NCBI GenBank assembly: GCA_950097015.1
Contig: CATNEN010000025.1
Location: forward strand, 6,758,001-6,822,000
Direction of reading: 5' to 3'
From: Macrostomum hystrix
Lineage: Eukaryota > Animalia > Platyhelminthes
DNA: 64,000 bases
Shown here: positions 26,817 to 56,800 of the stretch, one piece after another
Numbering within the stretch: position 1 is the stretch's first letter
How the letters are laid out: every line of letters starts with the position of its first letter
Notes under the pieces: generated by a model
Told to the model about the DNA's origin: nothing
What the model saw: only the letters and a program-made list of their open reading frames with translations
The model's database searches: none
Translations under genes and position numbers: made by a program

Positions 26817-29800
26817 GTGAGTTTGTAGTCATGTATTTTTGGGCCAGTAATTATTTTCAATCTATAATAAGTGCTGTAATCATTGTTGTAGTCGAAAAAA
26901 AATTATTTTTACCTGCAGTTTGCTCGTCCATAATTCTGACCATGTCGGCAACTGGCAAAGCCAATTCATTCTCTGACTGCACAGCTGTGGACGGCAATGT
27001 TGTGCTGAGCATGATGGATATGAACGGCGAGTTGAGCTTCTCTAATCTGCGCGAGATTTCCGGATTTTTGGTACTTTACAGGCTTCGAAATCTCACCACT
27101 TTGGCCGATCTGTTCCCGCAGCTGACAGTGATTCGGGGCCTGTCTACGCACGATAGCTACTCGCTAGTGCTGTTCGACCTTCCAGATCTGCAGGTAGCTA
27201 CTCCCAGTATTTGGAACCCCCGAATAATTTTCTCATGCATTTTCTGTAGCTTTGAAAAACTTCATGCTTTGTCATTAGCAATCTATTTTCTTGGCCTGCC
27301 ATTTCATATTTGTCGATTATCCATGACTTCCCATTACCCCGCTCTGTCTGGATCAATCATTTCTCCACTCTGTCTGGATCAATCTGTTCCCAGCTCTGTC
27401 TGGATCAACCATTGCCCAGCTCTGTCTGGATCAATCATTGCCCAGCTCTGTCTGGATCAATCATTGCCCTGCTCTGTCTGGATCAATCATTGCCCTGCTC
27501 TCTCTGGATCAATCATTGCCCTGCTCTGTCTGGATCAATCATTGCCCTGCTCTGTCTGGATCAATCATTGCCCTGCTCTCTCTGGATCAATCATTGCCCT
27601 GCTCTGTCTGGATCAATCATTGCCCAGCTCTGTCTGGATCAATCATTTCCCAGCTCTGTCTGGATCAATCATTGCCCAGCTCTGTCTGGATCAATCATTT
27701 CCCAGCTCTGTCTGGATCAATCATTTCCCAGCTCTGTCTGGATCAATCATTGCCCTGCTCTGTCTGGATCAATCATTGCCCTGCTCTCTCTGGATCAATC
27801 ATTGCCCTGCTCTGTCTGGATCAATCATTGCCCTGCTCTGTCTGGATCAATCATTGCCCTGCTCTGTCTGGATCAATCATTGCCCTGCTCTGTCTGGATC
27901 AATCATTGCCCAGCTCTGTCTGGATCAATCATTTTCCAGCTCTGTCTGGATCAATCATTTCCCAGCTCTGTCTGGATCAATCATTGCCCTGCTCTGTCTG
28001 GATCAATCATTTCTCCACTCTGTCTGGATCAATCTTTTCCCAGCTCTGTCTGGATCAATCATTGCCCAGCTCTGTCTGGATCAATCATTGCCCAGCTCTG
28101 TCTGGATCAATCATTGCCCTGCTCTGTCTGGATCAATCATTGCCCTGCTCTGTCTGGATCAATCATTGCCCTGCCCTGTCTGGATCAATCATTGCCCTGC
28201 TCTGTCTGGATCAATCATTGCCCTGCTCTGTCTGGATCAATCATTGCCCTGCTCTGTCTGGATCAATCATTTCCCAGCTCTGTCTGGATCAATCATTTCC
28301 CAGCTCTGTCTGGATCAATCATTTCCCAGCTCTGTCTGGATCAATCATTTCCCAGCTCTGTCTGGATCAATCATTTCCCAGCTCTGTCTGGATCAATCAT
28401 TTCCCAGCTCTGTCTGGATCAATCATTTCTCCGCTCTGTCTGGATCAATCATTTCCCAGCTCTGTCTGGATCAATCATTGCCCTGCTCTGTCTGGATCAA
28501 TCATTGCCCTGCTCTGTCTGGATCAATCATTGCCCTGCTCTGTCTGGATCAATCATTGCCCTGCTCTGTCTGGATCAATCATTTCCCAGCTCTGTCTGGA
28601 TCAATCATTTCCCAGCTCTGTCTGGATCAATCATTGCCCTGCTCTGTCTGGATCAATCATTTCCCAGCTCTGTCTGGATCAATCATTTCCCAGCTCTGTC
28701 TGGATCAATCATTTCCCAGCTCTGTCTGGATCAATCATTTCCCAGCTCTGTCTGGATCAATCATTGCCCTGCTCTGTCTGGATCAATCATTGCCCTGCTC
28801 TGTCTGGATCAATCATTGCCCTGCTCTGTCTGGATCAATCATTGCCCTGCTCTGTCTGGATCAATCATTTCCCAGCCCTGTCTGGATCAATCATTTCCCA
28901 GCTCTGTCTGGATCAATCATTTCCCAGCTCTGTCTGGATCAATCATTTCCCAGCTCTGTCTGGATCAATCATTTCCCAGCTCTGTCTGGATCAATCATTT
29001 CCCAGCTCTGTCTGGATCAATCATTTCTCCGCTCTGTCTGGATCAATCATTTCCCAGCTCTGTCTGGATCAATCATTGCCCTGCTCTGTCTGGATCAATC
29101 ATTGCCCTGCTCTGTCTGGATCAATCATTGCCCTGCTCTGTCTGGATCAATCATTTCCCAGCTCTGTCTGGATCAATCATTTCCCAGCTCTGTCTGGATC
29201 AATCATTTCCCAGCTCTGTCTGGATCAATCATTTCCCAGCTCTGTCTGGATCAATCATTTCCCAGCTCTGTCTGGATCAATCATTTCCCAGCTCTGTCTG
29301 GATCAATCATTTCCCAGCTCTGTCTGGATCAATCATTTCCCAGCTCTGTCTGGATCAATCATTTCCCAGCTCTGTCTGGATCAATCATTTCCCAGCTCTG
29401 TCTGGATCAATCATTGCCCTGCTCTGTCTGGATCAATCATTGCCCTGCTCTATCTGGATCAATCATTGCCCTGCTCTGTCTGGATCAATCATTTCCCAGC
29501 TCTGTCTGGATCAATCATTTCCCAGCTCTGTCTGGATCAATCATTTCCCAGCTCTGTCTGGATCAATCATTTCCCAGCTCTGTCTGGATCAATCATTTCC
29601 CAGCTCTGTCTGGATCAATCATTGCCCTGCTCTGTCTGGATCAATCATTGCCCTAGCTGCTCTGTCTGGATCAATCATTGCCCTGCTCTGTCTGGATCAA
29701 TCATTGCCCTGCTCTGTCTGGATCAATCATTGCCCTGCTCTGTCTGGATCAATCATTGCCCTGCTCTGTCTGGATCAATCATTTCCCAGCTCTGTCTGGA

Positions 29801-32800
29801 TCAATCATTTCTCCGCTCTGTCTGGATCAATCATTTCCCAGCTCTGTCTGGATCAATCATTTCCCAGCTCTGTCTGGATCAATCATTTCCCCGCTCTGTC
29901 TGGATCAATCATTTCCCAGCTCTGTCTGGATCAATCATTGCCCTGCTCTGTCTGGATCAATCATTGCCCTGCTCTGTCTGGATCAATCATTTCCCAGCTC
30001 TGTCTGGATCAATCATTTCCCAGCTCTGTCTGGATCAATCATTTCCCAGCTCTGTCTGGATCAATCATTTCCCAGCTCTGTCTGGATCAATCATTTCCCA
30101 GCTCTGTCTGGATCAATCATTTCCCAGCTCTGTCTGGATCAATCATTTCCCAGCTCTGTCTGGATCAATCATTGCCCTGCTCTGTCTGGATCAATCATTG
30201 CCCCGCTCTGTCTGGATCAATCATTTCCCAGCTCTGTCTGGATCAATCATTGCCCTGCTCTGTCTGGATCAATCATTGCCCTGCTCTGTCTGGATCAATC
30301 ATTGCCCTGCTCTGTCTGGATCAATCATTGCCCTGCTCTGTCTGGATCAATCATTGCCCTGCTCTGTCTGGATCAATCATTGCCCTGCTCTGTCTGGATC
30401 AATCATTTCCCAGCTCTGTCTGGATCAATCATTGCCCTGCTCTGTCTGGATCAATCATTGCCCTGCTCTGTCTGGATCAATCATTGCCCTGCTCTGTCTG
30501 GATCAATCATTGCCCTGCTCTGTCTGGATCAATCATTTCCCAGCTCTGTCTGGATCAATCATTTCCCAGCTCTGTCTGGATCAATCATTGCCCTGCTCTG
30601 TCTGGATCAATCATTGCCCTGCTCTGTCTGGATCACTTAAACAGTCATTGATCTAAAAGCTAACTATTCCTATTAATAATACCCACCCGTTTGCTTCCGC
30701 ACCGCAGGACATGGCCCTACCAAAGCTTCGTCGCATCGATCGTGGCGGAATCAGAGTTGAAAGCGCGCCGAAACTCTGCTATCACGCCTCTGTTAATTTC
30801 TCAGCTATACTTAGTCCGCATTACAAAGCCACTTTTCACAATGTTCCCGATAAAACACTATGCAACGATGTTTGTCCTGGCGAGCTGAGGTGGCATGAAC
30901 GACCCGACCGGTCCAAATATGTCTACAAGTGAGCCGGGTTATATCGTAGGACGCTAACAATTTAGATGGTAGATTAATAATCCTGCGCAGACTGAATTTC
31001 TTAAAATCAAAAGGCGAGAAATATAGTTTCATTAATAGTTGAAATAGTTAAGAGAGTACAATCGCAATCTAGGATAAAAAAATCGCATTTATAGCCGGCT
31101 AATGTATTGTGTGTGTATGTGTGTGTACAAAAGTCCTGACACTAGCTTTGCAAGGCCTTACTAAATGTCAAAGCAATTTCCTTTCGTCTGTTGGCTAGCT
31201 ATATTGTGTATTATAAGGCCAATATATTGCTAGTATCGTAAAGCTTTCCTATTCCGTTGTGTCCTAACAGCAGACTGCTGCTAGCTAGGCCTAACGGAAT
31301 TGAATCATTCCATCTACTAGTTTGGTCCGCTCTAGCTATGCCTAATGGCCTAGTGCGACATTCTGAAAACTGGGCTAATCACCAGCAGCTAGTCTGTGCG
31401 GCTGTCTCCACTAGGTCTCCATAGAGGGAAGGCTGTCCCAGTTATAAATCATCTAATCCTCCACACCAGCGGTCGAAGCTTGGATTGTTGTTTGGACGGA
31501 AAAGGATCTGTCCCTTTCTCTTTCCCTTCTCTCTCTCTCTCTCTCTCGCTCTAGAAATTTTTTTGTCTGCAATTGGCAATTTCCTTAGTGCTACGGTTTT
31601 CTACCGCGTCTCATTTTGCTTATATTTGCGTAAATCAGATTTAGTGTAGAAAAAAACAAAACACGACTGAGTTTGTTTTTTTCTTTTGTCTCTCTGCGAC
31701 TAATAAATTATTTAAAAAATATCTTACTCGAAATTTTATACGTCACGCGTGTTAAAAAAACGTGTAATTATTGAGGTAAATTTGTTTTTGAAAAGACAGC
31801 AAAATAACTAGGTTGGTAAGAACTAGGACTGAAAGCTGTCTAAAGCAATACCTGTCAGCAATTTAAGTAATTGCTAGGCCCTACGATGCAGTTTTCTCCT
31901 GATACTAGTAGTCTTGCATCTTGTTCTATTTCCGGTAGAATAATAATTAGTTTGGAAAGATAGTATGCTTCTTAACTGTTTTGGCAGATTCTGTTGTCTG
32001 CTTTAGTTTGGACTTATAGTTCGACTAATCGACTGCCTTCCGTTTGTGTATCTAGGCAATCATTTAACCATGTTTAGCCCACTGTTGTGCTGGGCATGGG
32101 CTCTGTAATTGATGATTCTGTTGTCATGTCACGCACTTACAGTCTAAATTTACTTGCACTAAAATAATATTCTCCTATGTGGTTAGACAGCTATGTGGTC
32201 AGAGCTCCGGACTCACGACTGAAGGTCGAAGGTTCGATTACCGACATAGGCGTAGGAACGGGGGGACAGTGGGGCCATGGCTCCCCCACATTTAAAATGC
32301 AAAATGTTGACTTTTTGCTTATTTTTTACTATTTTTTACTTCAAGGGCAATATTGAAATAATAACAATTGTCATTTTTTGGGATTTTTTTCGGGGAAATG
32401 GATCCTCCCCTTGGCCTTGGCCCCCCCCACTTTTTTAATCATTCCTACGCCTATGATTACCGACTCCACTGGAAAAAATTGTGTCCTTTAGCAAGACACT
32501 TAACTCTGCATTGCTTCAGTTCACCCAGCTGTTAAGTGGGTACCAGCATTAGCTGGGATAATTGAGGGTGGGTGTGGCGTCCCCCCAGTCCATGGACTGA
32601 ACAGCCGTACGCAGCCTTCAGATGCGCCGCGCAATAGCTGCGGCTGTGCTGACGTCTGCTTACCTGGCCCTAAAAGGGCATGTGTGATCAATTATTAATT
32701 AATACGAGTATTTTTAATGGTATGCTACTCACGAAATTACTAACAAAATAATTTGTTGACTAGAATATTTTCAAAAGCGGGATTTGACGGACTAAAAGCA

Positions 32801-35800
32801 TGAAAACGATAGTGCGCCGTATTTAGATGCATGAAATAAATAAGTGTTTCACCTCGGTGATTGATAAATAGAAAACTACGAGTATATCCTTTATTATTCA
32901 TCGGCTAGATTAACCAGTCTGACGAATAAATACAATCTATAATCACCAGACGCTCTAAGCTAAGAGAACACAATTGAAAAGGAGAGAAATTATAACGAAA
33001 CCATTTCTATCAGTAATGTTTCTTCCCTGGAGAATGAGTTTGCGTTTTCTACTCCATTACTGCTCACTATATAAGGCTTCAGAAAATACAGTTATTGAGA
33101 TTCAACTTATTTTCTTTTTCTGTTGGCCCGATAGAGGGTCGCGGAAAGAGCCAACGTCAATATTTTTCCTCTACCGAAATTTCACAACTGCTATTTCATT
33201 CTAGCCTAACGGGTTAATAGTTATTTAAAATAATTTCTAAAATCGCTATTAACTATATTTTGATATTGCGAGATATATTTAAAACAATAAAATAGTTTTA
33301 TGGTGTAAAACAGACAGATTGGTTTAATGCGGGCTAAATGAATTCAAAGTACTCATATAAATCAATAAAGTATTAGATATATGGCTAAAATTCCTGTGGT
33401 AAATATGCCAAATTATATTTACGTTCACTTTGTCAGCTGTTGTCTTTAATAGGTCTCTATTTAATAATTATTATTAATAATTAATAATTGATTACACCTG
33501 TCTGATTGGGCCAGATGTGCAGCCGACATCACAGCCGCAGCTATTGCGCGGCGCATCTGAAGGCTGCGTACGGCTGTTCATTCCACGGTTTGGGGAGGGG
33601 GCGCCACACCCACCTTCAATTATCCCAGCTTATGCTAGTACCAATTTAACAGCTGGGTGAACTGAAGCAATGCAGAGCTAAGTGTCTTGCTAAAGGTCAC
33701 AAATTGTTCCAGTGGAGTCGGTAATCGAACCCCCGACCTTCAAGTCGTGAGTCCGACGCTCTAACCACAAGGCTACAACCCCTCTTTTATGCTACATATA
33801 TGTTTTATGCTACACATATAGTACATTATCGTGTTAGAAGGCATTTATAGTATTCTTATGCATTACTTAGTCAAACGCATGCTACTATGCTAATTTTTTC
33901 TTTCGATCTTGCGTTAGTCGCTTACCGGCCTTCAATTCGAACTAGTTGAGGGGTAGTTTCACTGGCTAGTCATATTTGGTCATGAACGCATTTTTACTGT
34001 ATCGTCGTACGTTACAAAATTTAGACCCAAGAATGCTTATCGACGTGCTAGTCTGTGGTTGAGCCTCTCCTCTGTCCCTTCATCAGTCTGTGGCTGAGCC
34101 TCTCCGCTGTCCCTTCATCAGTCTGTGGCTGAGCCTCTCCGCTGTCCCTTCATCAGTCTGTGGCTGAGCCTCTCCTCTGTCCCATCATCAGTCTGTGGCT
34201 GAGCCTCTCCTCTGTCCCATCATCAGTCTGTGGCTGAGCCTCTCCTCTGTCCCATCATCAGTCTGTGGCTGAGCCTCTCCTCTGTCCCTTCATCAGTCTG
34301 TGGCTGAGCCTCTCCTCTGTCCCATCATCAGTCTGTGGCTGAGCCTCTCCTCTGTCCCTTCATCAGTCTATGGCTGAGCCTCTCCTCTGTCCCATCATCA
34401 GTCTGTGGCTGAGCCTCTCCTCTGTCCCTTCATCAGTCTGTGGCTGAGCCTCTCCGCTGTCCCTTCATCAGTCTGTGGCTGAGCCTCTCCTCTGTCCCAT
34501 CATCAGTCTGTGGCTGAGCCTCTCCTCTGTCCCTTCATCAGTCTGTGGCTGAGCCTCTCCTCTGTCCCTTCATCAGTCTGTGGCTGAGCCTCTCCTCTGT
34601 CCCTTCATCAGTCTATGGCTGAGCCTCTCCTCTGTCCCTTCATCAGTCTGTGGCTGAGCCTCTCCTCTGTCCCTTCATCAGTCTATGGCTGAGCCTCTCC
34701 TCTGTCCCTTCATCAGTCTGTGGCTGAGCCTCTCCTCTGTCCCATCATCAGTCTGTGGCTGAGCCTCTCCTCTGTCCCTTCATCAGTCTGTGGCTGTGGT
34801 TGAGCCCTATATATTGTAGTTAAGAACAGACATTGACTGCAGCAGCTTAACAACCATGAGAAACTAGCTGGCTATCCCGAATCCCGCATTGCAGTTCGCT
34901 GTGCCCCTATCCGGACAAATGCTGGAGCCGGTCAATCTGCCAGAGCCGCTGCAATCCAGTCTGCGGAATCTCCGGCTGCCTCATCGGGCCGGAGGCTGAA
35001 AAACTGTCCACTGCGGGCGTCAATCCCAGCAACACCTGCTGCCCACCTGCCTGCCTGTCCGGCTGCTTTAACTTAACCGTCAGACACTGCGCCGCTTGTC
35101 GTGGCTTTCGACTTAACGGCGCCTGCGTTGACCGCTGTCCGCCAAAATACGTGTCCTACAAGGAATGGCAGTGCATCACCGAGCGAGAATGCGTCAGCAG
35201 ATCCACTGGCGCCAAATCGTCGTCCAATAGTCTGAGCGTCACCGAGCGAACCAAGATGAAGCTGTTTAACGGCACCTGCGTGCAGGCCTGCCCGCTTGGC
35301 TATGCTGTTAGCAATGGCCAGACCTGCGTCAAGTGCGCCGACGCCCGCAACTGCGCCAGATACTGCGATTCCCAGCTGGTGCACTCCATTGACGATCTGG
35401 AGACCGTCAAAGGCTGCACTGTTATGCCCAAACTCATCATATCGCTGTCGGATAATATACGTGAGTGTTGGCCACTTTGACCGCGTCATTAAACCCGAAT
35501 ATATTGTAGGTAATAGTTTCTAAGGGATTTCTTAGGGATTAAAACTCATTTGGGTAGGGGATTTCTTAGGGATTAAAACTCATTTTGGTAGGGGATTTCT
35601 TAGGGATTAAAACTCATTTGGGTAGGGGATTTCTTAGGGATTAAAACTCACTTGGGTAGGGGATTTCTTAGGGATTAAAACTCATTTGGGTAGGGGATTT
35701 CTTAGGGATTAAAACTCATTTTGGTAGGGGATTTCTTAGGGATTAAAACTCATTTGGGTAGGGGATTTCTTAGGGATTAAAACTCATTTGGGTAGGGGAT

Positions 35801-38800
35801 TTCTTAGGGATTAAAACTCATTTGGGTAGGGGATTTCTTAGGGATCAAAACTCATTTGGGTAGGGGATTTCTTAGGGATCAAAATTCATTTGGGTAGGGG
35901 ATTTCTTAGGGGTCAAAATTCATTTGGGTAGGGGATTTCTTAGGGATCAAAATTCATTTGGGTAGGGGATTTCTTAGGGATCAAAACTCATCTGGGGTAG
36001 GCTATTTCTTCCGGGGATTGAAACACATCTGGAGTTAAATATTTCTAAGGGGATCGAAACTCAAAACAATGGGACCCATCGTTGTTCCTCAGGGATATTG
36101 GTCTGAGAGGCAAACGCGGTACCTGTTCACCACTTGCCCCTATAATTTCTTGTGGGATAAAAAATCACACACAACATGACTAAATGAGGATTTTCTAATC
36201 AAGCTTCTCTGGGGTCTAAGGATCAGAGCTGCTCTATGTAATGATTTGTCATGCAAATTGGATTGACAATTTGTGATGGAAATGAGTGAAAAGCAATTTT
36301 TTGGATCCTAATTAAAAAGAGGATGAAATATTACCTACGTGAATCAGGTGCCTCATTTTCATCAAGATTTGCCCCCAAGCTTCGTTGCCACTTCGGTGTA
36401 GAAAAAATATAACGCAAGCATTTTCTGCTTGAATTACTTAACTTCACGTTTGTGTTATCATCTTTCCGAGCTAGTCCTAATTGGATTTGAAATTTATGTT
36501 CTCAATCTTCCCCTGAGTTGATCGGCGTCGATCAACCGACAATAAATGCTACCCGCTAGCAGTCATTAGTGGCGGCTTGTTGCTCCGCAAGCAGTCAACA
36601 TTTTTCTGGGCAGGGATTTTAGCTCACGTGCTGCGCCGTCTAGAATTTCCTAATGCTGTGTTTTTTTAACCGCATTTTTTTCTAATAGTACTTTTGATGA
36701 AATAAAGCCGAAAGATTTCATAGTTAGTTATTTTGGGTAAGCCATTTGAAATCAATCATTTATTTGATATATACATTTTTTTGTTAAACCTGCCCTGATT
36801 AGCCCATATGTACAGCACAGCCGCAGCTATTGCGCGGCGCAACTGAAGGCTGCGTACGACTGTTCAGTCCATGGACTGGGGGGACACCACACCCACCCTC
36901 AATTACCCCAGCCAATGCTGGTACCCATTTAACAGCTGGGTGAACTGAAGCAATGCAGAGCTAAGTGTCTTGCTAAAGGACACAAACTGTTCCAGCGGAG
37001 TCTGGAATCGAACCCACAACCTTCAAGACATGAGTCCGCTGCTCTAACGACTAAACCCCAATGTTATATACATACGAGATTTCATGTATTTAACGATTTA
37101 TGTCACGTATTAGGATTAGGCATTCGTTTATTTATAGCTACACTCAATATCAGACATTCTAGTACAGAAAAGGAAAGCCAATTATTTTAATGGATCTTTC
37201 TGGTTTAATCTAAAGTAAAAGCGTACCCTACCCTAAAGACTGTCTGTCTGGCAGTCGCATTTTTTATTATAAATTATAATCTCTATATCCTAAAACGAAG
37301 CACCGTGTCTCTAACAGTCTTTTGCATTATGTTTTTACTATTTTTTGCCGAATATTTACTCAATCGGCTTGTGCGTGTCTTATGTAAGACCTGAAAAAAT
37401 AAAAAACTAAAGAATATGACACGTTCTATAAATATATCGTTAGTGGGTTTCAGAAGCAATAAATGATTTTCATTGCTAGAGGTAAATCTAACATACTGAA
37501 GGTTTGGTATCGCGTGGCACACTCAATGACTGGGATGAGACACTATATGACTAGGATGGCACACTCAATGACTAGGATGGCACACTCAATGACTAGGATG
37601 GCACACTCAATGACTAGGATGGCACACTCAATGACTAGGATGGCACACTCAATGACTGGGATGGCACATCCTGACTAGGATGAGGATAACATTTTAAGGG
37701 AGTTATTTGACTGACAAAATTCGCGCTGCTCGCTTTGATAAAAGGGCATTACCTTGTATAGACTGCACTCTGTTCAGGCCCTAGCCTGTACGGCGACCAT
37801 GAATCAATAACGCAATTTATTCATACTGTTTTTTTGCGTAGTGGTCGCGTAGGTGGGTCTTATAAATGTATCCAACCCTAACATCTGGAGTGTATAGAGG
37901 GGCTGCAACTGGAGCTAGGAAATTCACCCGCGGATGAACTTCTAGGGATAGGAAATAGGAAATGGAGAGTTAGTTGGACTTCTCATTTCCTGTGCGGCTC
38001 TACAGGGAGTCATCTATTCATAATGAAAATGACTATAAGGAAATGGAAATTTAATGAAATGGGCCTTAGCTCTCGTTGATTGAAATGCTCATTCGATTCA
38101 CTAATTTTTTTCTATCAAAGACTTGCAGCGGAGGGAGGGCTTGGGGTTCTTCTGGTGCAATTTATACCCTTGAGGGCTGACCTCACTCCGTAGCACAGTG
38201 AGAGTGTACACTGTCAGACGATGCAAAAAACAGGGTAGATGTACACCCCTGTGTGAGTGATTTGCCTGCGTACTGTAAGTTCCTATCTGTGTGCGTGTGT
38301 GTTTTGGAATCAGTGGATAGAGCAGCACATTGCCTCCTCGCCCGCTGCATGTCTAACATCACCAAATTATTCGCCAGTACTCAAAGCTCACTTATAATTA
38401 TTGTTATTATTAGTATTATTCTTCGCTAGAACACTGCCACTCAAAAACACCGACTCAATTTTCTCAGGAGGGTGAGTGGCGGTTAAGAGCGGTTAACGCG
38501 TTTACCTCTCGCACCAAGGTCCCTGAGCTCGATTCCGCGACATTTGGGGCGCTGCCGCATAGAGAAGGCTTGGGGGCTTGTCGTGAAATTGACGCCATTG
38601 AGGGTCTACCTTCCAAGGCAAAGTGAAAGTTGACACTGCCTGACGATGAGAAAGTCAGGGCATGGTAGAGCGTGTGCCTGCGTACAGTATCTGTGTGTGT
38701 GTGCTCAGGAGTCAGCGGAATGGGCAGAATTGCCTCCTAGCTGGCTGCGGGTCTAGTGTCACCAAATAATTGCAACCGTCCTGAAATTATTATTATTAAC

Positions 38801-41800
38801 TATTATTATGACTAATTATAATTCGCTCCTCGCCGAATCCGCTATTGCCAATTCCAGCCGATCTGGAGAGACGCCTAGCTGAGAGTTTTCGCGACCTGAC
38901 GGAGATTGAGCAGGACCTGATGATTCTAAACTCACCTGCGCTTAACTCACTGTCCTTTCTGTCCAATCTGCGTGTTATACACGGCCGGCGCTACAATGAT
39001 ATGGGCATAATGAAGTAGGTGAAAATGGTAGTCTATTTGGACTTTATTGTATTTACTTTTATGTTCGTGAGTCTCCGATTTCTCCCATCCCTGACTCTCC
39101 GAATTCTCCCATCCCTGACTCTCCGATTTCTCCCATCCCTGACTCTCAGATTTCTTCCATCTCTGACTCTCCGATTTCTCCTATCCCTGACTCTCAGATT
39201 TCTCCCATCGCTGACTCTCAGATTTCTCTCATCTCTGACTCTCAGATTTCTCCCATCTTTGACTCTCAGATTTCTCCCATCACAGACTCATTGATTTTCC
39301 AATCCTTGACTGTCTTTTTTCTCCTCATCTGACTCACAGACAAATTAATTGCAAACTCCCAGTGTTATTTTTTTCTCCCGTTTCTCCCGCTCTTACTAAA
39401 GCAGCCAGCAGAAGGAGACGGCCACGCTGACAGTTGAGCACACCGACTTTCTTCAATCGCTGTGGAACACAACCAACGGCAGGCGGGTACTTATCGCTCG
39501 CGGCAAAGTTCGCTTCTACATGAATAGGCGCCTGTGCAATCATCACATTCTAGAATTTGTTAAAAACACTCTAAACGTCGTGGATACCGTTGATGTGGCT
39601 CAAGATTTATCTCCGCGCACCAATGGCGACCTGGCATCGTGCATTAATCGCACCTTTGACATTGTGGTCGGCCTAGTCACCTCTCGGGGTGTGATGCTTC
39701 ACTGGCCAATGCTGGAGGTGAAAGACAGCCGATCTCTGCTTGGATATTCAATTTATTACCGCCAAGTCCAGCCAGGTAAAACTGTCCAGTACGCGGATCC
39801 TTCTACCTGCGAAATTCGCAAGTGGCAAACAGTATTCACCACCTGCACTAATCTGTTTGTGCCGGACAACATCATGGCCACCAGCGTCAATACTAAATCC
39901 GGCGTTAAACTCGGTGACGACGGCAAAGTTGAAGGCGTCGACAAGCTGCGCGTCTCCTGTCACCTGTCCAATTGTTCGCAGTGCGTCGGCGACTGTGAGA
40001 GAAAACTGTCACCGCGCCAGTGCCAGTTCATGGTGCCAGTAAGTTTACTTGCGCGCCTATGACTGTGGAGACCCGTTCTGACAACCTTCTCTGACACCCC
40101 AACTCTTCCCCTGACACCCGGACTCTTCTTCTGACACCCCAACTCTTCTCCTGACACCCCAACTCTTCTTCTGACACCCCAACTCTTCACCTGACATCCA
40201 GACTCTTCTTCTGACACCCCAACTCTTCTTCTGACACCCCAAGTCTTGTTAAATCACCTGAACTTGTTGAAGCGCCTATGACTGTGGAGACCCGATCTGA
40301 CAACCTTCCCTGACACCCCAACTCCTCTCCTGACACCCGGACTCTTCTTCTGACACCCCAACTCTTCTCCTGACACCCGGACTCTTCTTCTGACACCCCA
40401 ACTATTCTTCTGACACCCCAACTCTTCTCCTTACACTCGGACTTTTCTTCTGACACCCCAACTCTTCTCCTGACACCCAACTCTTCTTCTGACACCCCAA
40501 GTCTTGTTAAATCACCTGAACTATTCTGTGACACCCCAACTCTTCTCCTGACACCCAACTCTTCTCGGGACACCCCAACTCTTCTCCTGACACCCCAACT
40601 CTTCTCCTGACACCCCAACTCTTCTCCTGACACCCCAACTCTTCTCCTGACACCCCAACTCTTCTCCTGACACCCCAACTCTTCTCCTGACACCCCAACT
40701 CTTCTCCTGACACTCGGACTTTTCTTTTGACACCCACTGTCCTATCTAATACCAGGAAAGAAACTACGAGTATAATTGTGCATTATGCATGTAGCTATTA
40801 TATCAAATTTTCAGGTTCTTATTAGTTTAATTCACAAGCGATGACTCTATCCCTACTCCAATATATCGTTCCCCTCCAGTCACATGACCCGCTTAAAAGT
40901 ACACAGTAGGCTGAGCAAACTTTCCTGGTCCCAACCTGCGAGTCTGGTCTGCTTCTATAAGTGGAAGGGCAGATTGTCTCGATCTCTCATTTGTTTCATT
41001 TTATCAGTAGATAAATTGATCATATATGCTACAAAGTGTTGCATTTTTATGGCCTATAGTTATTATATAGTTAAGTAGCGTGCCTGTTAAATGAGGGTTC
41101 GATATTTGGACTCCACTTCAGTGGAAATTGTACCGACTGACTCCATCTGATAGCGTCTAACTGCATCGCGAGATCGTTAAATGTACTTTTGGCTAGCAAA
41201 TTATGGGATAGAAGTTGTGTACTTTATTTTCTAGTTTCGATCTGCCTTCATTCGTGGCCGAATATTGATCTAGTCTCCGGATCTGTTCTCTTTCTGCACA
41301 GTCAGTCCTACTTATAATAAATCACTAGCTACGAGTAGCCTAATCTTCATTTTACATGCAGTTCTTAGCAGCTCAGACCTATCATTCTGTGGCTTAATAA
41401 TCTTCTCTTCATTCGAATCGCTCACAACTCGCTAGTCACGTCCGAGCCCCACCCCGTCCTAAAAAACCAAGCTGGCGCTTATGAGAATAGCCATCAGTTC
41501 AGTGTGTCTATCTAAAACAAATTTGTATCAGCTTTTCTTTGTTAGATTTATGATTCTTGTTATAGAGTACAGATTAGAACTTATACGAATCTTGCTAGTC
41601 AGTTTATGTCAGATCTAGTCAGATCAGACTAGTCTGACAGCATAGATCACTGTCTTGTTTTACTTATTGTCACCTTGGTTGTCACCTGTCCTCACTGATA
41701 ATCACCTGTACTCACTGATAATCACCTGTCCTCACTGATAATCACCTGTCCTCACTGATAATCACCTGTCCTCACTGATAATCACCTGTCCTCACTGATA

Positions 41801-44800
41801 ATCACCTGTCCTCACTGATAATCACCTGTCCTCACTAATAATCACCTGTCCTCACTGATAATCACCTGTCCTCACTGATAATCACCTGTCCTCACTAATA
41901 ATCACCTGTCCTCACTGATAATACCTTGTCATCGCTGATAATCACCTGTACTTACTGATAACCACCACTCCTCACTGATAATCACATTTCCATACTAATT
42001 GTCACCTGCCGTCACTGATAATCACTGGAACCACCGTGTTTTTTGTGACCGCGTTACCATAGCAACAGCTTCTTAAAATTCGTTCGCAATCCCCATAGGG
42101 CCTGAAGCCGGCCAGCCGCTACGCCATGTTCGTGATGCCCCAGGTGGTGATCGAGCGTCAGCAGGAATACGGCAGCAAGAGTCGGATAATCTACACCGAG
42201 ACTATGCCAACTCAACCGTCGCCGCCGCACGATTTCAGCGTGGAATCCGAGAGCGCCAACGAGATCCGGTTGAAATGGAAGCCGCCTCTAAAGCCAAACG
42301 GCAATGTCACTCACTATCTGCTGCGCTTCAAAGAGATGCCCTCGCATCAGAACAATTTAATCTACGTTGACTACTGCTCAGATAGTGATAACAGACCAAT
42401 TAGTCTGGCTGCACGGGAGCAGCAGCAGCAGCAACAGCAGCAGAACGCCTTGGCCGGAGCCGGCAACGAAGACGCCTCTGGTCGGCGAATGAACTTCACG
42501 ATGGACTGCCAGAAGCACTGCTCGTGTGGAGTGCAGCCCGATCCGCGTCAGCGAGAGGACGTCATCTATTTTGAGGACACACTGTTTAAAATCATCTTCA
42601 CGCGTAGGTAAGTACATGGGGTGTTGAAGGATGTCAGAAGTAGAAATCCCGCGCTATTTTTCTCCCTGGGGAAAAACCATCACTTTTATACTCATCTGTG
42701 TCATTCATGCGGCTTTGATGTTCTCATTTATTTCATTTTTTCCATATTTCCATATTTCCCAGTGCTACAAATATGCCAGAGCAGAGTCTGTTGTTCTCTG
42801 ACTCTCAGAGTAGGCGTGAAGTCATGCGGCTTTCAACGGATTATTATCATTCAAAAGCTCATCTGATAGGCAAAAAACTTTTGGCATACAGAGTTGAGTG
42901 CATTGAATAGAATATTGATGATACTGGTTTTAAATAGAATCGTCACTCAATATAAACGAGTAATCTTAGTGTTTTCTAAAAAACTTTATTAGCTAAGGAA
43001 TACAGTGGTCTTCTAGACAATAAGAATAGGCCATTGTGCTGATCAACTAAAAGCTTATGTGCGACTAGTACACTTGTATTGTATTTTTGCTTCAGGACTT
43101 TACTTACAAAAACAAAGCTGTACTATTAGGCCGTTTCTGTCAGTGTGTCTTTCAGTGTTTTTAGCACACAAAAGAACACATGCTCCACTTAAGCATTCAT
43201 TAATAAAATCTGACGTCATATACAGACGTTAAATTCTGCCAGAATGTTTTTGTGTAACTAGCTAGGTACTAGTGTACTTATGTGATACTAGCGAACTGCA
43301 CTGTTATTAGAATTCTTATATTCTCATTAGAATCGAGTTCTCAGCCCCAAGAGAATCGTTCTCAACCCATGAGAATCGTCCTCAACCCATGAGAGTCGTC
43401 CTCAACACATTAGAGATTTGTCCTGAACCCATGAGAATCGTCCTCAACACATTAGAGATTTGTCCTGAACCCATGAGAATCGTCCTGAGCACATGAGAGA
43501 TTTGTCCTGAACCCATGAGAATCGTCCTGAGCACATGAGAGATTTGTCCTGAACCCATGAGAATCGTCCTGAGCACATGAGAGATTTGTCCTGAACCCAT
43601 GAGAATCGTCCTGAGCACATGAGAGATTTGTCCTGAACCAATGAGAATCGTCCTGAGCACATGAGAGATTTGTCCTGAACCCATGAGAATCGTCCTCAAC
43701 ACACGAGAGATTTGTCCTGAACCCATGAGAATCGTCCTCAACCCATGAGAATCGTGCTGAACCCATATGAGAATCGTCCTCAACCCATATGAGAATCGTG
43801 CTCAACCCATGAGAATCGTGCTCAACCCATGAGAATCGTCCTCAACACATGAGAATCGTCCTCAACCCATGAGAATCGTCCTCAACACATGAGAATCGTC
43901 CTCAACACATGAGAATCGTCCTCAACCCATGAGAATCGTCCTCAACACATGAGAATCGTCCTCAACCCATGAGAATCGTCCTCAACACATGAGAGATTTT
44001 TCCTGAACCCATGAGAATCGTCCTCAACACATGAGAGATTTGTCCTTAACCTATGAGAATCGTCCTCAACACATGAGAGACTTGTCCTGAACCCATGAGA
44101 ATCGTCCTCAACCCATGAGAATCGTCCTCAGCCCATGAGAATCGTCCTCAGCCCATGAGTATCGTGCTCAACCCATGAGAATCGTGCTGAACCCATATGA
44201 GAATCGTCCTCAACCCATGAGAATCGTGCTGAACCCATGAGAATCGTGCTCAACCCATATGAGAATCGTCCTCAACCCATGAGAATCGTGCTGAACCCAT
44301 GAGAATCGTCCTCAACCCATGAGAATCGTTCTGAACCTATTTGAGAATCGTCCTCAGCCCATGAGTATCGTGCTCAACCCATGAGAATCGTGCTGAACCC
44401 ATATGAGAATCGTGCTCAACCATATGAGAATCGTCCTCAACCCATGAGAATCGTGCTGAACCCATGAGAATCGTCCTCAACCCATGAGAATCGTGCTGAA
44501 CCCATGAGAATCGTCCTCAACCCATGAGAATCGTCCTCAGCCCATGAGAATCGTGCTCAACCCATATGAGAATCGTCCTCAACCCATGAGAATCGTCCTC
44601 AACACATGAGAATCGTCCTCAACCCATGAGAATCGTCCTCAACACATGAGAATCGTCCTCAACACATGAGAATCGTCCTCAACACATGAGAGATTTTTCC
44701 TGAACCCATGAGAATCGTCCTCAACACATGAGAGATTTGTCCTTAACCCATGAGAATCGTCCTGAACACATGAGAGATTTGTCCTCAACCCATGAGAATC

Positions 44801-47800
44801 GTCCTCAACACATGAGAGACTTGTCCTGAACCCATGAGAATCGTCCTCAACCCATGAGAATCGTCCTCAGCCCATGAGAATCGTCCTCAGCCCATGAGAA
44901 TCGTGCTCAACCCATGAGAATCGTGCTGAACCCATATGAGAATCGTGCTCAACCATATGAGAATCGTCCTCAACCCATGAGAATCGTTCTGAACCCATAT
45001 GAGAATCGTCCTCAACCCATGAGAATCGTTCTGAACCCATATGAGAATCGTCCTCAACCCATGAGAATCGTTCTGAACCCATATGAGAATCGTCCTCAAC
45101 CCATGAGAATCGTGCTGAACCCATGAGAATCGTGCTCAACCCATATGAGAATCGTCCTCAACCCATGAGAATCGTGCTCAACCCATATGAGAATCGTCCT
45201 CAACCCATGAGAATCGTTCTGAACCTATGTGAGAATCGTCTTCAACCCATGAGAATCGTGCTCAACCCATATGAGAATCGTGCTCAACCCATATGAGAAT
45301 CGTCCTCAACCCATGAGAATCGTTCTGAACCTATTTGAGAATCGTCCTCAACCCATGAGAATCGTGCTCAACCCATGTGAGAATCGTCCTCAACCCATGA
45401 GAATTGTTCTGAGCCTGTATCTATCCGGTCTAAAAAACGCGGCACAGAAGCGTACTGCTTTAATGTTAATATAACTAGTCTGTTCTTTGGTTTAACTAGC
45501 TAGACAATATTGTACTGTACTGACCTTTTAAGCAAACAATCTTACATTGTGTGGATTTTATTGTGTTGGTATTTCTCTAGTCCGGTGACGGTTTTTATAG
45601 ACGATAGAAAATAAACACACAGACGCTGCGTGATTGAACGACTATAAAGCTAGGCTATTTTTAGTGTGCTCAAAAACATTTTTCTACCTGCGTATTACGA
45701 CAGAGTTTGCGTGCTCACCACTAGGAGCAATTAAAAGTACTTGTGTGTAATGCGCGACAACAAAAGCAACAATAACAAGCGAGCATTTTGCACGCAAGCA
45801 CACGCACACACACACCCCTTCCTCACGCTACGTACTCGTATACGAGTATATGTATGAAGTAAATATCTTGTTTGAACTTGTAGCCTAGTGGTTAAGGCGT
45901 CGGACTCACGACTTGAAGGTCGGGGGTTCGATTCCCGACTCTACTGGAACAATTTGTGTCCTTTAGCAAGACACTTAACTCTGCATTGCTTCAGTTCACC
46001 CAGCTGTTAAATGGGAACCAGCATTAGCTGGGATAATTGAAGGTGGGTGTGGCGTCCCCCCAGTCCATGGACTGAACAGCTGTACGCAGCCTTCAGATGC
46101 GCCGCGCATTAGCTGCGGCTGTGCTGTCGGCTGCACATCTGACCCAATTGGGGCAGGTGTAATCAATTATAATTATTATTATTGAACTTGTACAATCTAT
46201 TAATGCGTAGCGTGAGTACTGAATTTTTCGTCAGGAAGTCGTGGCCATACTACTTAATAAAATGCTACTACTTTAATCTATTTATCATTTTATTCTATGC
46301 ATTTATATGTATTTATTGTTATTTTGTGAACTGGAAATAACAAAAATTTAAGCAGTCCTGAGCTAGTGCAGTGCAGTGCAATACAAAATTTTTTTCAAGT
46401 GTGAAGTTCAAAGTTCACTTTTTGCCTACCGTTTAGTTGATTCTTCAATAGTTGTCATTCTGTATTTTTTTAGAGTTTTTTAAGAAGCAGTTGACAAAAT
46501 AAACTTGGGTTAAAGATTAGTACAGCTAAGTGGTGACGTCTGTTTGTTCCCATGGAAATTAACCTCAACACCATGAGAATCGTCCTCCAACCCGATGAGA
46601 ATCGTCCTCCAACCCGATGAGAATCGTCCTCCAACACCATGAGAATCGTCCTCTAACCCGATGAGAATCGTCCTCCAACTCGATGAGAATCGTCCTCCAA
46701 CCTCATGAGAATCGTCCTCCAACCCGATGAGAATCGTCCTCCAACCTCATGAGAATCGTCCTCCAACCTCATGAGAATCGTCCTCCAACCCGATGAGAAT
46801 CGTCCCCAACCTAATGAGAATCGTCCCTAACCCGATGAGAATCGTCCCCGCCTCAATGAGAATCGTCCCCACCTCAATGAGAATCGTCCTCCAACCTCAT
46901 GAGAATCGTCCTCCAACTCGATGAGAATCGTCCTCCAACCTCATGAGAATCGTCCTCCAACCCGATGAGAATCGTCCTCCAACCTCATGAGAATCGTCCT
47001 CCAACCTCATGAGAATCGTCCTCCAACCCGATGAGAATCGTCCTCCAACCTCATGAGAATCGTCCTCCAACCCGATGAGAATCGTCCCCAACCTAATGAG
47101 AATCGTCCCTAACCCGATGAGAATCGTCCTCGCCTCAATGAGAATCGTCCCCACCTCAATGAGAATCGTCCTCCAACCTCATGAGAATCGTCCTCCAACT
47201 CGATGAGAATCGTCCTCCAACCTCATGAGAATCGTCCTCCAACCCGATGAGAATCGTCCTCCAACCTCATGAGAATCGTCCTCCAACCTCATGAGAATCG
47301 TCCTCCAACCTCATGAGAATCGTCCTCCAACCCGATGAGGGTCGTCCTCCAACCCATGAGAATCGTTCTGAACCCATATGAGAATCTCATGAGAATCGTC
47401 CCCAACCCAATAAGAATCGTCCCCAACCCTATGAGAATCGTCCCCACCTCAATGAGAATCGTCCCCGCCTCAATGAGAATCGTCCCCGCCTCAATGAGAA
47501 TCGTCCCCAACCCGATGAGAATCGTCCCCAACCCGATGAGAATCGTCCCCAACCCAATGAGAATCGTCCCTAACCCGATGAGAATCGTCCCCGCCTCAAT
47601 GAGAATCGTCCCCACCTCAATGAGAATCGTCCCCAACCCAATGAGAATCGTCCCCAACCCGATGAGAATCGTCCTCCAACCCAATGAGAATCGTCCCCAC
47701 CTCAATGAGAATCGTCCTCCAACCTCATGAGAATCGTCCTCCAACTCGATGAGAATCGTCCTCCAACCTCATGAGAATCGTCCTCCAACCCGATGAGAAT

Positions 47801-50800
47801 CGTCCTCCAACCTCATGAGAATCGTCCTCCAACCTCATGAGAATCGTCCTCCAACCCGATGAGAATCGTCCTCCAACCTCATGAGAATCGTCCTCCAACC
47901 CGATGAGGGTCGTCCTCCAACCCATGAGAATCGTTCTGAACCCATATGAGAATCTCATGAGAATCGTCCCCAACCCAATAAGAATCGTCCCCAACCCTAT
48001 GAGAATCGTCCCCACCTCAATGAGAATCGTCCCCGCCTCAATGAGAATCGTCCCCAACCCGATGAGAATCGTCCCCAACCCGATGAGAATCGTCCCCAAC
48101 CCAATGAGAATCGTCCCTAACCCGATGAGAATCGTCCCCGCCTCAATGAGAATCGTCCCCACCTCAATGAGAATCGTCCCCAACCCAATGAGAATCGTCC
48201 CCAACCCGATGAGAATCGTCCCCAACCCAATGAGAATCGTCCCCAACCCGATGAGAATCGTCCCCATCTCGATGAAAATCGTCCCCAACCTGATGAGAAT
48301 AGTCTTCTACCCATTGAGAATCGTCCCCAACCCGGTTAGAATCGTACTCAAGTCCATCTACATTACCTCTAATTGATTAAGCATCGAAACCAACCCAATC
48401 GCAGCGATATGGACAATCCAGTGTTTTCTTGCTCTTTATCTGGCGTGCCATGCAATTTTTCGCCATTCGAGTACGACCAGCTGTCGCAAGACTTGCGGCT
48501 CACAAATTGCGTCTTTTATTTTGGCGACGACCATTGTCAAAAACTGTTTAATAAGTAGATCTACGGTTACTTGTTCGCACTTTTATTGACATTAATTCAG
48601 ATCAAAGAGATTTTAAGTCTGCACTACTTTCGCATTTGTGATAGATATGCCCTCTGTTTAACTAGAAGTTTTGTTATGGTACATCAACTATTATCTATGT
48701 ACTATGCTTTTATTGAGCCGTCGTTTTTTAGAACTGCATGTACGATCTAAAAGCTACAATCAGCAATATGCCTTATTTCTTTAAGTAGGAATTTGCCAAC
48801 CTCGGACCACAAAGCTGTCTCATCTCTCCCATGTCTCATCTTTCCCATGTCTCATCTCTCCCATGTCTCATCTCTCCCGTCTCATCTCTTCCATCTTATC
48901 TTCCCCCTGTCTCATCTTTCCCATGTCTCATCTCTCCCATGTCTCATCTTTCCCATGTCTCATCTCTCCCATGTCTCATCTCTCCCATGTCTCATCTCTC
49001 CCATGTCTCATCTCTCCCATGTCTCATCTCTCCCATGTCTCATCGTTCCCATGTCTCATCTCTCCCATGTCTCATCTCTCCCATGTCTCATCTTTCCCAT
49101 GTCTCATCTTTCCCATGTCTCATCTCTCCCATGTCTCATCTTTCCCATGTCTCATCTCTCCCATGTCTCATCTCTCCCATGTCTCATCTCTCCCATGTCT
49201 CATCTCTCCCATGTCTCATCTCTCCCATGTCTCATCTCTCCCATGTCTCATCTTTCCCATGTCTCATCTCTCCCATGTCTCATCTCTCCCATGTCTCATC
49301 TCTCCCATGTCTCATCTCTCCCATGTCTCATCTTTCCCATGTCTCATCTCTCCCATGTCTCATCTTTCCCATGTCTCATCTCTCCCATGTCTCATCTCTC
49401 CCGTCTCATCTCTTCCATCTTATCTTCCCCCTGTCTCATCTTTCCCATGTCTCATCTCTCCCATGTCTCATCGTTCCCATGTCTCATCTCTCCCATGTCT
49501 CATCTCTCCCATGTCTCATCTTTCCCATGTCTCATCTCTCCCATGTCTCATCTTTCCCATGTCTCATCTCTCCCATGTCTCATCTCTCCCATGTCTCATC
49601 TTTCCCATGTCTCATCTCTCCCATGTCTCATCTCTCCCATGTCTCATCTCTCCCATGTCTCATCTCTCCCATGTCTCATCTTTCCCATGTCTCATCTCTC
49701 CCATGTCTCATCTTTCCCATGTCTCATCTTTCCCATGTCTCATCTCTCCCATGTCTCATCTCTCCCATGTCTCATCGTTCCCATGTCTCATCTCTCCCAT
49801 GTCTCATCTCTCCCATGTCTCATCTCTTCCATCTCATCTCTTCCCTCTTCTTATCTCTTCGTTCACTCATCTCTACCCTGTTTTATCTCTCCCTGCTTCA
49901 CCTCTCCTGTCTCATTTCGCCCCTGTCTCATCTCTGTCAATCCGACCCGATTGTCATATCTTGAATTGTCATCTTGGCCCGCGAGTCATGTAAGTTTTGT
50001 CCTTGCATCAGTTCATCCCCTGAGAAAAGAGTTTTAACACAGTGGAGTGCACGATCTGAGAAACATTCGGTTTTCTTCATTTCCAGAATTTTCCCACTGA
50101 AGATGGAGTCACATTTGTAATGTAACAGGCTTATTTTAATTGTTTGCCAATGTTTTTTAAATTGCTTGATGAGTTTCACTTGACACTTGACAGTAAAAAA
50201 GTGTCCCAACTTCATTTTTTCCACAGGCCCTCATTGTCGGACGATGCGGGATTAAAAATCAAAATCGAGGATTTGAAACAGCCGCGCTGGCTGACCAACT
50301 CCAGCGGGGTCGGTCGGACCCGACAGTCGGCCTCCACTGCCGCCTCTGCTTCTGCCAACCAGGAGGAGCGATGGATTCAGTCTTCAACGGCGGCGACAAC
50401 AGCTGCTCCGACTACAACAGCGCCGGTTACTAGCGCGTCGCCAACCGCTTCTACAATGAAGGCAATCCCCCAAGCTACTCCGCTACCAGCTCCTGGCTGC
50501 GACAATGAACAATGCCCCAGGAACATTGTTAAACAGTTGGAAACAGCTAGCGACAATCGGCGCTGGATTGATGGCTATGTGACTGTACGAGGCACATCCT
50601 ACACTGTCACTAATCTGAAGCACTTCACTCACTATGAACTGTCGGTGAGTGAGATCAATCTCTGTATGTCTTATGACATCTCAAATACTTTGCTCTGAGA
50701 TTTGGGTTTTATTCCCCAAAAACTATGCTTGCTTCTTATCATGAAAGGGTGAAATTTAGATTTCGTTCTCAATCATGATCGGATGAGATTTTGATGTTCT

Positions 50801-53800: not shown

Positions 53801-56800
53801 TATCAATGTGCCTTGTAGGTGGGCGCTTGAGGGCGTAAATTGCACGACAGGCCAAATAAATGTGGCCTCACCGTGGAATCGAGCTCAGGGACCTTGGCGC
53901 GAGACGCAAACGCGTTAGACCGCTCTGCCGCCCTTAAATTATTGTTCCATCACAATATCATATAAAGAGCATATGAGCACTCGGAGACTTTGAAGATTGA
54001 ATGCATCGGACCTGTCTCTTATTATCGACTGCAAAGTCCTTTGTGATAAGCTCATTTTCCTGTGATAAGCCAAACCTGCTTGAATTAGTTGTCTTTTGTA
54101 GCATTTCTCTCTAATCATTTCCTGAGTACGTGTTGGCTTTTTTGAGCTCCAATTTTGCCGCTTCCCCAGACCGTGCCATTATCCATCCCAATTTCATCTG
54201 CCGTCACCTGTCTGCGCCTTTCCTGTCTGTGCGTCTGCTCTCCACACTAATTCTAATTGCCAGGCGAAATTGTGATTATACAAATTCAGCTGTAAGCGCG
54301 CTTTCCACATGACTGTCTTCTTCTTTCAGGTAGGAATAAGACGGGATCTGTGTCTGTAATTGTTATCCTTCCATCAATATTCCTTTCTGTCTTCTGTGTA
54401 TCTAAAGTTCTAGGGGACCCAGTATTTATAGCTTCGGAATTCTGACTCAAAGGTCAAAATGAAAACAATTCGTGTCCTTAAGCAGGACACTTAATTCCCT
54501 GGTGGTTCTTTTTCAGCCAGTTGTAAAAATTGTTATTAGCATCAGCTGGGTTAGAAATTTGGCGAGGCGAGGCGGCCGTCCTAGACTGTCCACGGACTGA
54601 ACAGCTGTACCCCGTATAAAACGGAACGGTCACAAAAAAGGCTTGTGACCGTCAATTCGAATGTTATGATGACATGTTACCGTTGGTGGCCATTTTTGTG
54701 GCCGTTTTTTGCAGGCATGTGTTACTTGATTTCTTTCTTCATGCAATATAGTATGACTATATAAAATACACTTAACAGTAGAACTATCAAGGGGAATTCT
54801 CCCCCCTGTAATTTTTTGGCAGCGCCTGAATGCTAACAGCGTTGGGTGGTGACTGATTGGTTGACAGACTAGGCGATGGTGTCCTGTGGTTGAGCTGCGC
54901 CTAATATTTTGGCCTGATCAGTGAAATTTGAGAAATTCGCGTCAGGGTGTCTATAGTGGCCTAGTTCCACCTGTTGTAGGCCTTGAAGGTCCAGCAAATC
55001 CGTCTAGATAAAGGTAGGTGACCACCGAGGACGGAGATGACGCAGGCACATTCGGGTGACATGCTGATTAATTTTGAAGGCCTGGTAAGGCCGCACTGAG
55101 GCGCAGTGCTAATTCGTGTATAGGGGTGTATGAAATACACTAGCGCTTATGGAAAAAAATCTGACCTTCGGCCAGAAATATTGAATATCTCGACTTTCTG
55201 AAGAGCTGGCGACTTGATTTTTGTTTCAGAAGATGCGTGCCTGCGTTGTTCCGTTCGAGTGCAGCACAAAACATTGTCAGGGGGGACTCCCCCCTGGGTA
55301 GTTCTACTATTAATTAAAATGCATATACTCATGCTCAGAAGTAGAACACATTTGACGCAAATTGGCAGTTTTAGAAATGACCAGATAGATGCATGGAGCA
55401 GAAAACATAAACTTCACAATTTAGTTGTAAATTATGTTACACTTCAGCCATCAGCCGTACGAGTCATGGAGGTCAGCGAACGATCACATAAATGGTCACA
55501 GGATGGTCAGATAGAACTGTCACACAGAACAGTCACATAGAACGGTCACACAGAACGGTCACACAGAACGGTCAAAGAACAGTCACACTGAACGGTCACA
55601 CAGAACAGTCACAGTAAACGGTCACACAGAACAGTCACAGTAAACGGTCACACAGAACAGTCACAGAACGGTCACAGAACAGTCACAGAGCGGTCACAGA
55701 ACGGTCACGCAGAACAGTCACACAATACCTGCGAAACCTGCGTGATCTTCTCTCTTTCTTTTAATAACTTTGCGTGATTGAGTCTTCTTTCATTTGATTA
55801 ACAGCATTCCTTTCTCACCTTCCATCATCCAGGTAACATACAGCGAGAGTGACATCCTTGGCACCGGCTCGTTCGGTCGCGTCTACCGCGGCGTTGTCCG
55901 CTCGCTAAGCACGCCGGCCGCGCCCTATCTGCCCTGCCGAGAAGACGTCCCAGTGGCCGTCAAGAATGTCAACGAGAAGGCCACAATGCGCGAACGGCAC
56001 GAGTTCCTTCAGGAGGCCACGCATATGAAGAAATTCAGGCAATGCGCTCACGTTGTGCGCCTAATTGGCGTGGTGTCTGAGAATGTCCCAATTCTTGTGC
56101 TCATGGAGCTCATGGAGAATGGCGATCTCAAGACCTGCCTGCGACAGATGCGACCAGATTCTGACGATCCCATCAGCAGGCCGATGTACGATCGAACCCG
56201 ACTGGTGATCTGGTGCGCCCAGATTGCCGACGGTATGTTTTACCTGGAGACTAAAAAGTATGTCCACCGCGACCTAGCCGCTCGAAACTGCATGGTTACG
56301 TCCGACTACTGCGTCAAGATTGGCGGTGAGTGTTTCAATTGAGTCGCCAATCTGTTCCACATATTTAATTAGGTCGCCAGTCCCTTCCACATATTTAATT
56401 AGGTCGCCAATCTGTTCCACATATTTAATTATGTCGCTAATCTGTTCCACATATTTAATTAGGTCGCCAGTCCCTTCCACATATTTAATTAGGTCGCCAA
56501 TCTGTTCCACATATTTAATTATGTCGCTAATCTGTTCCACATATTTAATTAGGTCGCCAATCTGTTCCACATATTTAATTTGGTCAACAATCCCTTCCAC
56601 ATATTTAATTTGGTCAACAATCCCTTCCACATATTTAATTTGGTCAACAATCCCTTCCACATATTTAATTTGGTCGCCAATCTGTTCCACATATTTAATA
56701 TGTTCCACAATCCGTTAATCCTGTTACTTTTCCTACCAGATTTCGGCATGACTAGAGACGTGTACTACTCAGACTATTACAAGAAGGAGGGCCAGGCGCC

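Follow-up and report, generated by a model that had tools for sequence, protein, structure and literature searches.

In mammals, optional exons that come straight after the alphaCT-coding exon of the insulin receptor gene determine which ligand is preferred; in C. elegans they govern targeting to neurons or production of a decoy. The site of INSR exon 11 is already known to carry an independent exon in an invertebrate, namely daf-2 exon 11.5 of C. elegans, which gives the cassette form DAF-2c, whose position is like that of the mammalian exon and whose use is promoted by RBFOX via UGCAUG (PMC4876481). Its donor is weak, and skipping of that donor leads into an in-frame stop and yields the secreted decoy DAF-2B (PMC7041946). 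A limited literature search found nothing on an exon at this position in flatworms, nor on a duplicated alphaCT in any insulin receptor. Here we examine a candidate for such an exon in a Macrostomum insulin receptor gene lying in a 64-kb stretch of DNA, the whole of which we call the window. Our preferred reading, at a probability of about 0.45, is that the candidate is a duplication-derived minor exon, skipped by most transcripts, whose use would either add a further, degenerate alphaCT or cut the receptor short as a secreted form. That figure, like the grading of the other readings, is a judgement and not a computed value.

The insulin receptor gene is on the plus strand and runs from at least 26919 to about 57308, with eleven exons mapped and with introns filled by minisatellites; the first exon, encoding the signal peptide, was not located upstream of 26919. 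The gene has the features of insulin/IGF receptors, with an L1-CR-L2-FnIII ectodomain, an alphaCT, a TM helix and a tyrosine kinase. The closest database relative is Macrostomum lignano Mlig028477g2 at 69-75% identity, and judged from sequence the window receptor is the ortholog of Mlig028477. Besides the ortholog, two more M. lignano receptor paralogs were retrieved, which are referred to as paralogs 2 and 3. The ortholog model (P0002) stops just past the TM helix because of a one-base assembly frameshift at about 27895-27917 of its locus, L001, and the kinase exons are intact downstream. The end of the FnIII-1 exon (window ~39950-40038) carries a Cys-rich insert with five Cys within about 22 residues, and a similar motif is found in 3/3 M. 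lignano paralogs. Elsewhere in the window, as read from translations only, there are a spliced Rab-family GTPase gene at 17930-19665, a single-exon ORF of 155 aa with a paired-Cys motif at 12323-12790, and decayed reverse-transcriptase/RNase H retroelement fragments at 7500-9100 and 23200-24150. The features in and around the intron that follows the alphaCT exon are these:

42099 to 42607, plus strand: the receptor's counterpart of INSR exon 10 (FnIII-2a, Cys cluster, alphaCT), 72% identical to Mlig028477g2, with donor AG/GTAAGT in phase 2
42540 to 42602, plus strand: the 21 alphaCT codons that are the putative source of a duplicate
42608 to 50226, plus strand: 7.6-kb intron at the INSR exon-11 position, with a non-repetitive part of 2.7 kb
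46566 to 48349, no strand assigned: array of a 21-22-nt minisatellite, ending 56 nt before the candidate acceptor
48369 to 48404, plus strand: branch-point-like CTAAT (48369-48373), C-rich tract and CAG acceptor (48402-48404), with a score of 9.8, the median of real acceptors
48405 to 48554, plus strand: candidate exon, and candidate only, of 150 nt in phase 2-2, coding for 50 aa with 4 Cys
48490 to 48552, plus strand: probable copy of the exon end that codes for alphaCT, diverged but without gaps, with 7/21 aa identical to the gene's own alphaCT and 9/21 to that of the M. lignano ortholog
48555 to 48560, plus strand: very weak donor GTAGAT, where read-through reaches an in-frame TAG at 48556-48558
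48735 to 48740, plus strand: TGCATG, an RBFOX-type motif, 181 nt downstream of the donor
48816 to 49935, no strand assigned: array of a 16-nt minisatellite
50227 to 50644, plus strand: receptor exon equivalent to INSR exon 12, without an R-x-x-R motif

The initial annotation had described the candidate as a hidden cassette exon, and the anatomy that it listed is all present: a C-rich CAG acceptor like the others of the gene, the CTAAT, a length of 150 nt in phase 2-2, and 50 aa with four Cys (spacing 6/18/8) in a segment that is open in the receptor frame only. With this anatomy confirmed, 48405-48554 remains a candidate exon. The claim that it shares the junction and phase of INSR exon 11 holds as well. 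The upstream exon ends FTR-AG/ at 42607, the downstream exon starts /G-CCC-TCA at 50227, the alphaCT register is exact against the vertebrate match ending FVPR, and the phase of the human INSR exon 11 junction equals the phase here. The candidate preserves the reading frame and lies in the intron that immediately follows the exon coding for alphaCT.

Splice models were trained on 27 acceptors and 25 donors from Macrostomum receptor genes. Of 1382 intronic AGs, the candidate acceptor belongs to the best-scoring 1%, and across 25.7 kb of unique intron the candidate is the sole in-frame, stop-free segment with an acceptor that strong. The donor, AA/GTAGAT, scores 2.0, and all 25 real donors score higher, at 2.8-11.5. 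It had been likened to the donors at 27194 and 39015; all three begin GTAG, but the other two keep the G at -1 or the G at +5, and the candidate has neither. Two further intronic segments of the same gene, 41472-41597 and 55265-55471, are in-frame and stop-free from AG to GT with summed splice scores above that of the candidate, and we take these to be chance pseudo-exons. Codon usage in the candidate lies between intron and exon, in that 17-28% of intronic open frames score higher and 5-9% of real exon windows score lower. The TGCATG is the only sense copy in the 7.6-kb intron, for which we estimate a chance of about 7%.

The R-x-x-R cleavage motif is absent from the exon after alphaCT both in the window gene (50227-50644) and in the M. 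lignano ortholog (P0002 515-650), so that alphaCT, unlike in IR-A and IR-B, may not form the free end of a chain. Both receptors are possibly uncleaved. Paralog 2 of M. lignano has two R-x-x-R furin motifs after its alphaCT.

What the initial annotation missed is a likelier origin of the segment, by partial duplication of the alphaCT-coding exon end. When the peptide is searched against the M. lignano locus by tblastn, its best match is the alphaCT itself. The match consists of the last 21 codons, 48490-48552 against 42540-42602, aligned without gaps and ending one codon short of the donor register. Anchored at the donor, nucleotide identity is 39/90 against the gene's own exon end and 44/90 against that of the M. 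lignano ortholog, compared with a null of about 1200 intronic GT sites that has a mean of 29 and a maximum of 37. The anchored protein p values are 3e-4 against the own exon end, 2e-5 against the ortholog and <2e-5 against paralog 2. The anchored match is robust at 45, 66 and 90 nt (p <= 0.006 in all windows and <0.001 in most); the donor anchor had been fixed in the initial annotation before the likeness was known, and these window sizes were picked afterwards. In the same donor-anchored comparison, no other exon end of the window gene matches the segment. Without the anchor, alphaCT is still the best match in the whole intron, although the likeness is then weak, with p of 0.02 against the ortholog exon and 0.45 against the own exon. 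For the own exon only, a family-wide control gave 31/66 for the candidate and 30 for the next best site across all introns. On these sequence comparisons we consider it likely that the homology to the alphaCT exon end is true.

The extent of the copied sequence was also considered. Sequence comparisons detect no source for the 5' half of the candidate. Duplication of the whole of exon 10 with an internal deletion finds no match in the exon body, and a chimeric origin, in which the start of exon 12 is fused to the end of exon 10, was tested and is unsupported. Among about 1200 AG sites the candidate acceptor is the best match to the M. lignano exon-10 acceptor, yet it is not so for the window's own exon-10 acceptor; both adjoin C-rich arrays. 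Tandem genomic duplication has been described as a route of intron gain (PMC3265369), and the point in common with the present case is that splice signals are supplied in one step by duplicated gene sequence. The published case is an intron gain, whereas here the donor-side copy alone is well supported.

Codon positions 1, 2 and 3 differ in 7, 8 and 13 of the 21 codons, so positions 1 and 2 have changed nearly as much as they would without protein constraint. In neutral simulations, only 0.5-10% of runs leave a 63-nt block at this divergence without any indel or stop, and the gap-free, stop-free 63 nt suggests constraint on the frame. In exons of minor forms, protein change is relaxed while the frame is preserved. 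Of the alphaCT residues by which the human receptor contacts ligand or L1 (PMC8513149), the copy retains the equivalents of 704, 705 and 714, and those of 706, 708, 709 and 710 are altered, which makes a full second binding helix unlikely and a spacer or linker likelier.

In M. lignano, the ortholog model splices the two flanking exons directly and skips the candidate position. The 4.7-kb intron of the ortholog, present in one genome copy, has no homolog of the candidate by tblastn, blastn or sliding match, and paralog 2 likewise has none and also skips the position. Direct joining of the flanking exons is seen in M. lignano models only. The initial annotation had proposed alignment to insulin receptors of related species, and no conservation of the segment is found in either gene. 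The scale of this comparison is given by the four-fold sites, which are 51% different between the window species and M. lignano, the single and distant congener compared. One paralog-2 model, P0004, has a 38-aa insert at the same junction, drawn from L002 14765-14864 behind a strong acceptor; we reject it as a prediction artefact, as it maps to frameshifted intron pieces and is missing from four other models.

Searching SRA runs with the segment alone gave no match recorded as RNA, and two runs that contain part of it. Over 48350-48815, run X1 has one contig of 223 nt, unspliced across the candidate acceptor, and run X2 has one contig of 158 nt, unspliced across the candidate donor and extending 23 nt beyond it; X3 and X4, from the X1 study, have nothing on this interval. 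There is no spliced contig and there are no joints or loose ends over 48350-48815 in X1-X4, where the RNA type is presumed, no positive-control exon is included and contigs drop rare variants. No short database fragments spanning the alphaCT were found. The sole variant seen in the candidate, 48483 G>T, is synonymous at the third base of a Leu codon, and a single site of this kind is weak evidence. Downstream, neither the canonical poly(A) signal nor any of its common variants occurs within 1.5 kb of the read-through stop.

These results could also describe a dead relic, in which part of the alphaCT exon end was duplicated, perhaps served once as an exon and is now unspliced, leaving the skip form as the only receptor. 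The alphaCT similarity, the near-neutral change across codon positions, the decayed donor, the lack of inclusion among the RNA-candidate contigs and the absence of the segment from M. lignano all suit this account. It has to explain, though, how a copy that was never selected came to be free of gaps and stops together with an in-frame acceptor in the top 1%, which is rarely the case, and, as a dead exon loses its frame fast, the death must be recent. We find it rather doubtful.

The candidate sits in a 466-nt non-repetitive island between the arrays 46566-48349 and 48816-49935, and no second copy of the island exists in the 64-kb window or in the compared M. lignano receptor loci. The earlier description of it as a unique island is right as to repeats, but the last 63 nt of the candidate resemble the upstream exon end. 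An array ends 41-138 nt upstream of 7/10 downstream real acceptors of the receptor gene (window 30635-56699). The orthologous introns (window 43346-45404 and 46566-48349; M. lignano L001 23231-23874) have 20-22-nt minisatellites with a common 9-nt core (blastn E = 9e-8) and are otherwise unalignable. The window also contains a dispersed element of about 305 nt with a tRNA-like head, in copies 84-91% identical (45878-46182, 33472-33778, 32455-32704, 36784-37053 and 19124-19316). It is probably a SINE; ARAGORN called no tRNA in it.

Ordinary intron DNA could also have produced a chance pseudo-exon, with an acceptor tract that is the decayed last unit of a C-rich minisatellite, which it does resemble, and with a coincidental alphaCT likeness. 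Stop-free stretches are not rare, as 8% of unique intronic 49-codon windows lack stops, and the two chance segments noted above surpass the candidate in summed splice score; the unanchored similarity is weak, and the windows for the tests were picked with the likeness already in view. Against coincidence, the anchor was set beforehand and still gives the p values reported for every window size, and a Cys spacing of the type described below for paralog 3 occurs in 0/357 intronic peptides. On balance a pseudo-exon seems unlikely.

Paralog 3 of M. lignano (Mlig016060g2 / 001612g3 / 006624g1) has a separate 162-nt exon in the same intron, in phase 2-2 and with four Cys, at L003 22733-22894. Its acceptor scores 8.6 and its donor -4.4. 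All of the NCBI paralog-3 models (3/3) read through the weak donor to a stop, giving proteins of 916-925 aa without a TM helix, while the TM and kinase exons lie downstream and another model splices onward to 1541 aa. Between two genome copies the exon has 0 differences, compared with 14/500 nt just downstream. The real-looking exon, with the donor that is read through, lies within L003 22733-22970 and L004 31118-31358. The truncation in these models may reflect genuine short transcripts or incomplete assembly, and paralog 3 is a candidate DAF-2B-like secreted receptor in M. lignano. Its Cys spacing is 6/19/2 against 6/18/8 in the window candidate, and the shared spacing, absent from those 357 intronic peptides, has a post hoc p of 0.003-0.03; alignment similarity between the two exons is not significant (p ~0.5).

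That a M. lignano paralog has such an exon makes a real extra exon in the window gene plausible. To that extent the initial annotation is partly supported, while its isoform switch and ligand effect stay conjectural. Inclusion junctions did not turn up, the segment is missing from the M. lignano ortholog, and the donor is very weak. A constitutive exon, by which every receptor mRNA would carry the 50-aa insert and there would be no switch, could claim the open frame, the good acceptor and the tolerance of such an insert in paralog 3. It is very unlikely given the weakest donor of the set and the lack of spliced coverage in probable RNA runs of the same or a near-identical organism, which come with no positive control. 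If the X runs are RNA and the receptor is covered in them, they argue against constitutive inclusion and are still compatible with rare or cell-specific use.

The last alternative, that the segment was stranded or shuffled here from a gene for a DEG/ENaC channel, as the initial annotation had suggested from a loose C-x6-C likeness, can be set aside as most improbable, since no DEG/ENaC match appears in Pfam, NCBIfam, PDB sequences, Foldseek, VIA or Atlas and the portion likened to the second Cys motif of the channel is explained by alphaCT. The 49-aa peptide is in fact blank in Pfam, NCBIfam, PDB sequences and ESM Atlas features, at the low sensitivity that a length of 49 aa allows. Single-sequence AlphaFold models of it have a best pLDDT of 73, with the other four at 50-57. 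The best is a hairpin, short helix and strand, which speaks for the channel reading, but four of the five models fall below 57. It has no meaningful structural match, the best Foldseek E being 1.6 and the best VIA Z 3.4.

The preferred reading of a duplication-derived minor exon can be set out as follows. A tandem duplication would have copied the 3'-terminal part of the upstream exon or more, including alphaCT codons and donor, into the following intron, and the duplicate would since have retained its frame as a minor exon, one that may still be used at present. Once splicing enters at the strong acceptor, two outcomes would be open at the very weak donor. By the first, which taken singly is rather unlikely, splicing to the next exon would place 50 residues, a Cys-x6-Cys linker followed by a degenerate alphaCT-like segment, in the insert domain, comparable to DAF-2c or IR-B. 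By the second, which is unlikely and against which the lack of a poly(A) signal counts, read-through of the donor would meet the immediate stop and give an anchorless ectodomain fragment comparable to DAF-2B, or else a substrate for NMD. We would expect the copy to serve as a spacer or disulfide-bearing linker and not as another helix able to bind ligand; an influence on ligand binding would be hypothetical. The downstream TGCATG and the array 56 nt before the acceptor each lend slight support as context.

A stronger version, of a regulated alternative exon born from alphaCT, would give a receptor in which a disulfide-bearing linker connects two tandem alphaCT-like segments, and the same exon might also yield a secreted decoy; we regard this version as somewhat improbable. 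If it is true, the tandem-alphaCT exon and the paralog-3 exon would together mean that splice control arose at this intron a third time independently, mammals and nematodes being the other two cases, and the flatworm case would make the intron a repeated site of regulatory invention. If no transcripts exist, the segment is a minor fossil of exon duplication. Macrostomum is amenable to RT-PCR, in situ work and RNAi, and so the question is cheap to settle.

Among the systems to compare, mammalian INSR exon 11, the basis of IR-A and IR-B, shares with the candidate the intron position, the phase, the place right after alphaCT and the preservation of frame. The mammalian exon has 36 nt and no Cys, makes a major isoform and extends the alpha chain at the end that furin sets free; the candidate has 150 nt and 4 Cys, is followed by an exon without R-x-x-R and is known here from genomic sequence. 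The paralog-3 exon lies in the same intron as the candidate and is like it in having phase 2-2, four Cys, a strong acceptor, a very weak donor and a read-through stop, and unlike it in being backed by gene models and between-copy conservation and in having no detectable alphaCT copy. For daf-2 exon 11.5, splicing, cell specificity and function are established, the exon is conserved in C. briggsae, and the stop comes 46 nt after the donor. In the window candidate the stop is immediate and a poly(A) signal did not turn up; M. lignano lacks the segment, part of which would be an alphaCT copy. What the two have in common is an invertebrate insulin receptor as host, the position, a weak donor with a stop behind it, and a downstream UGCAUG.
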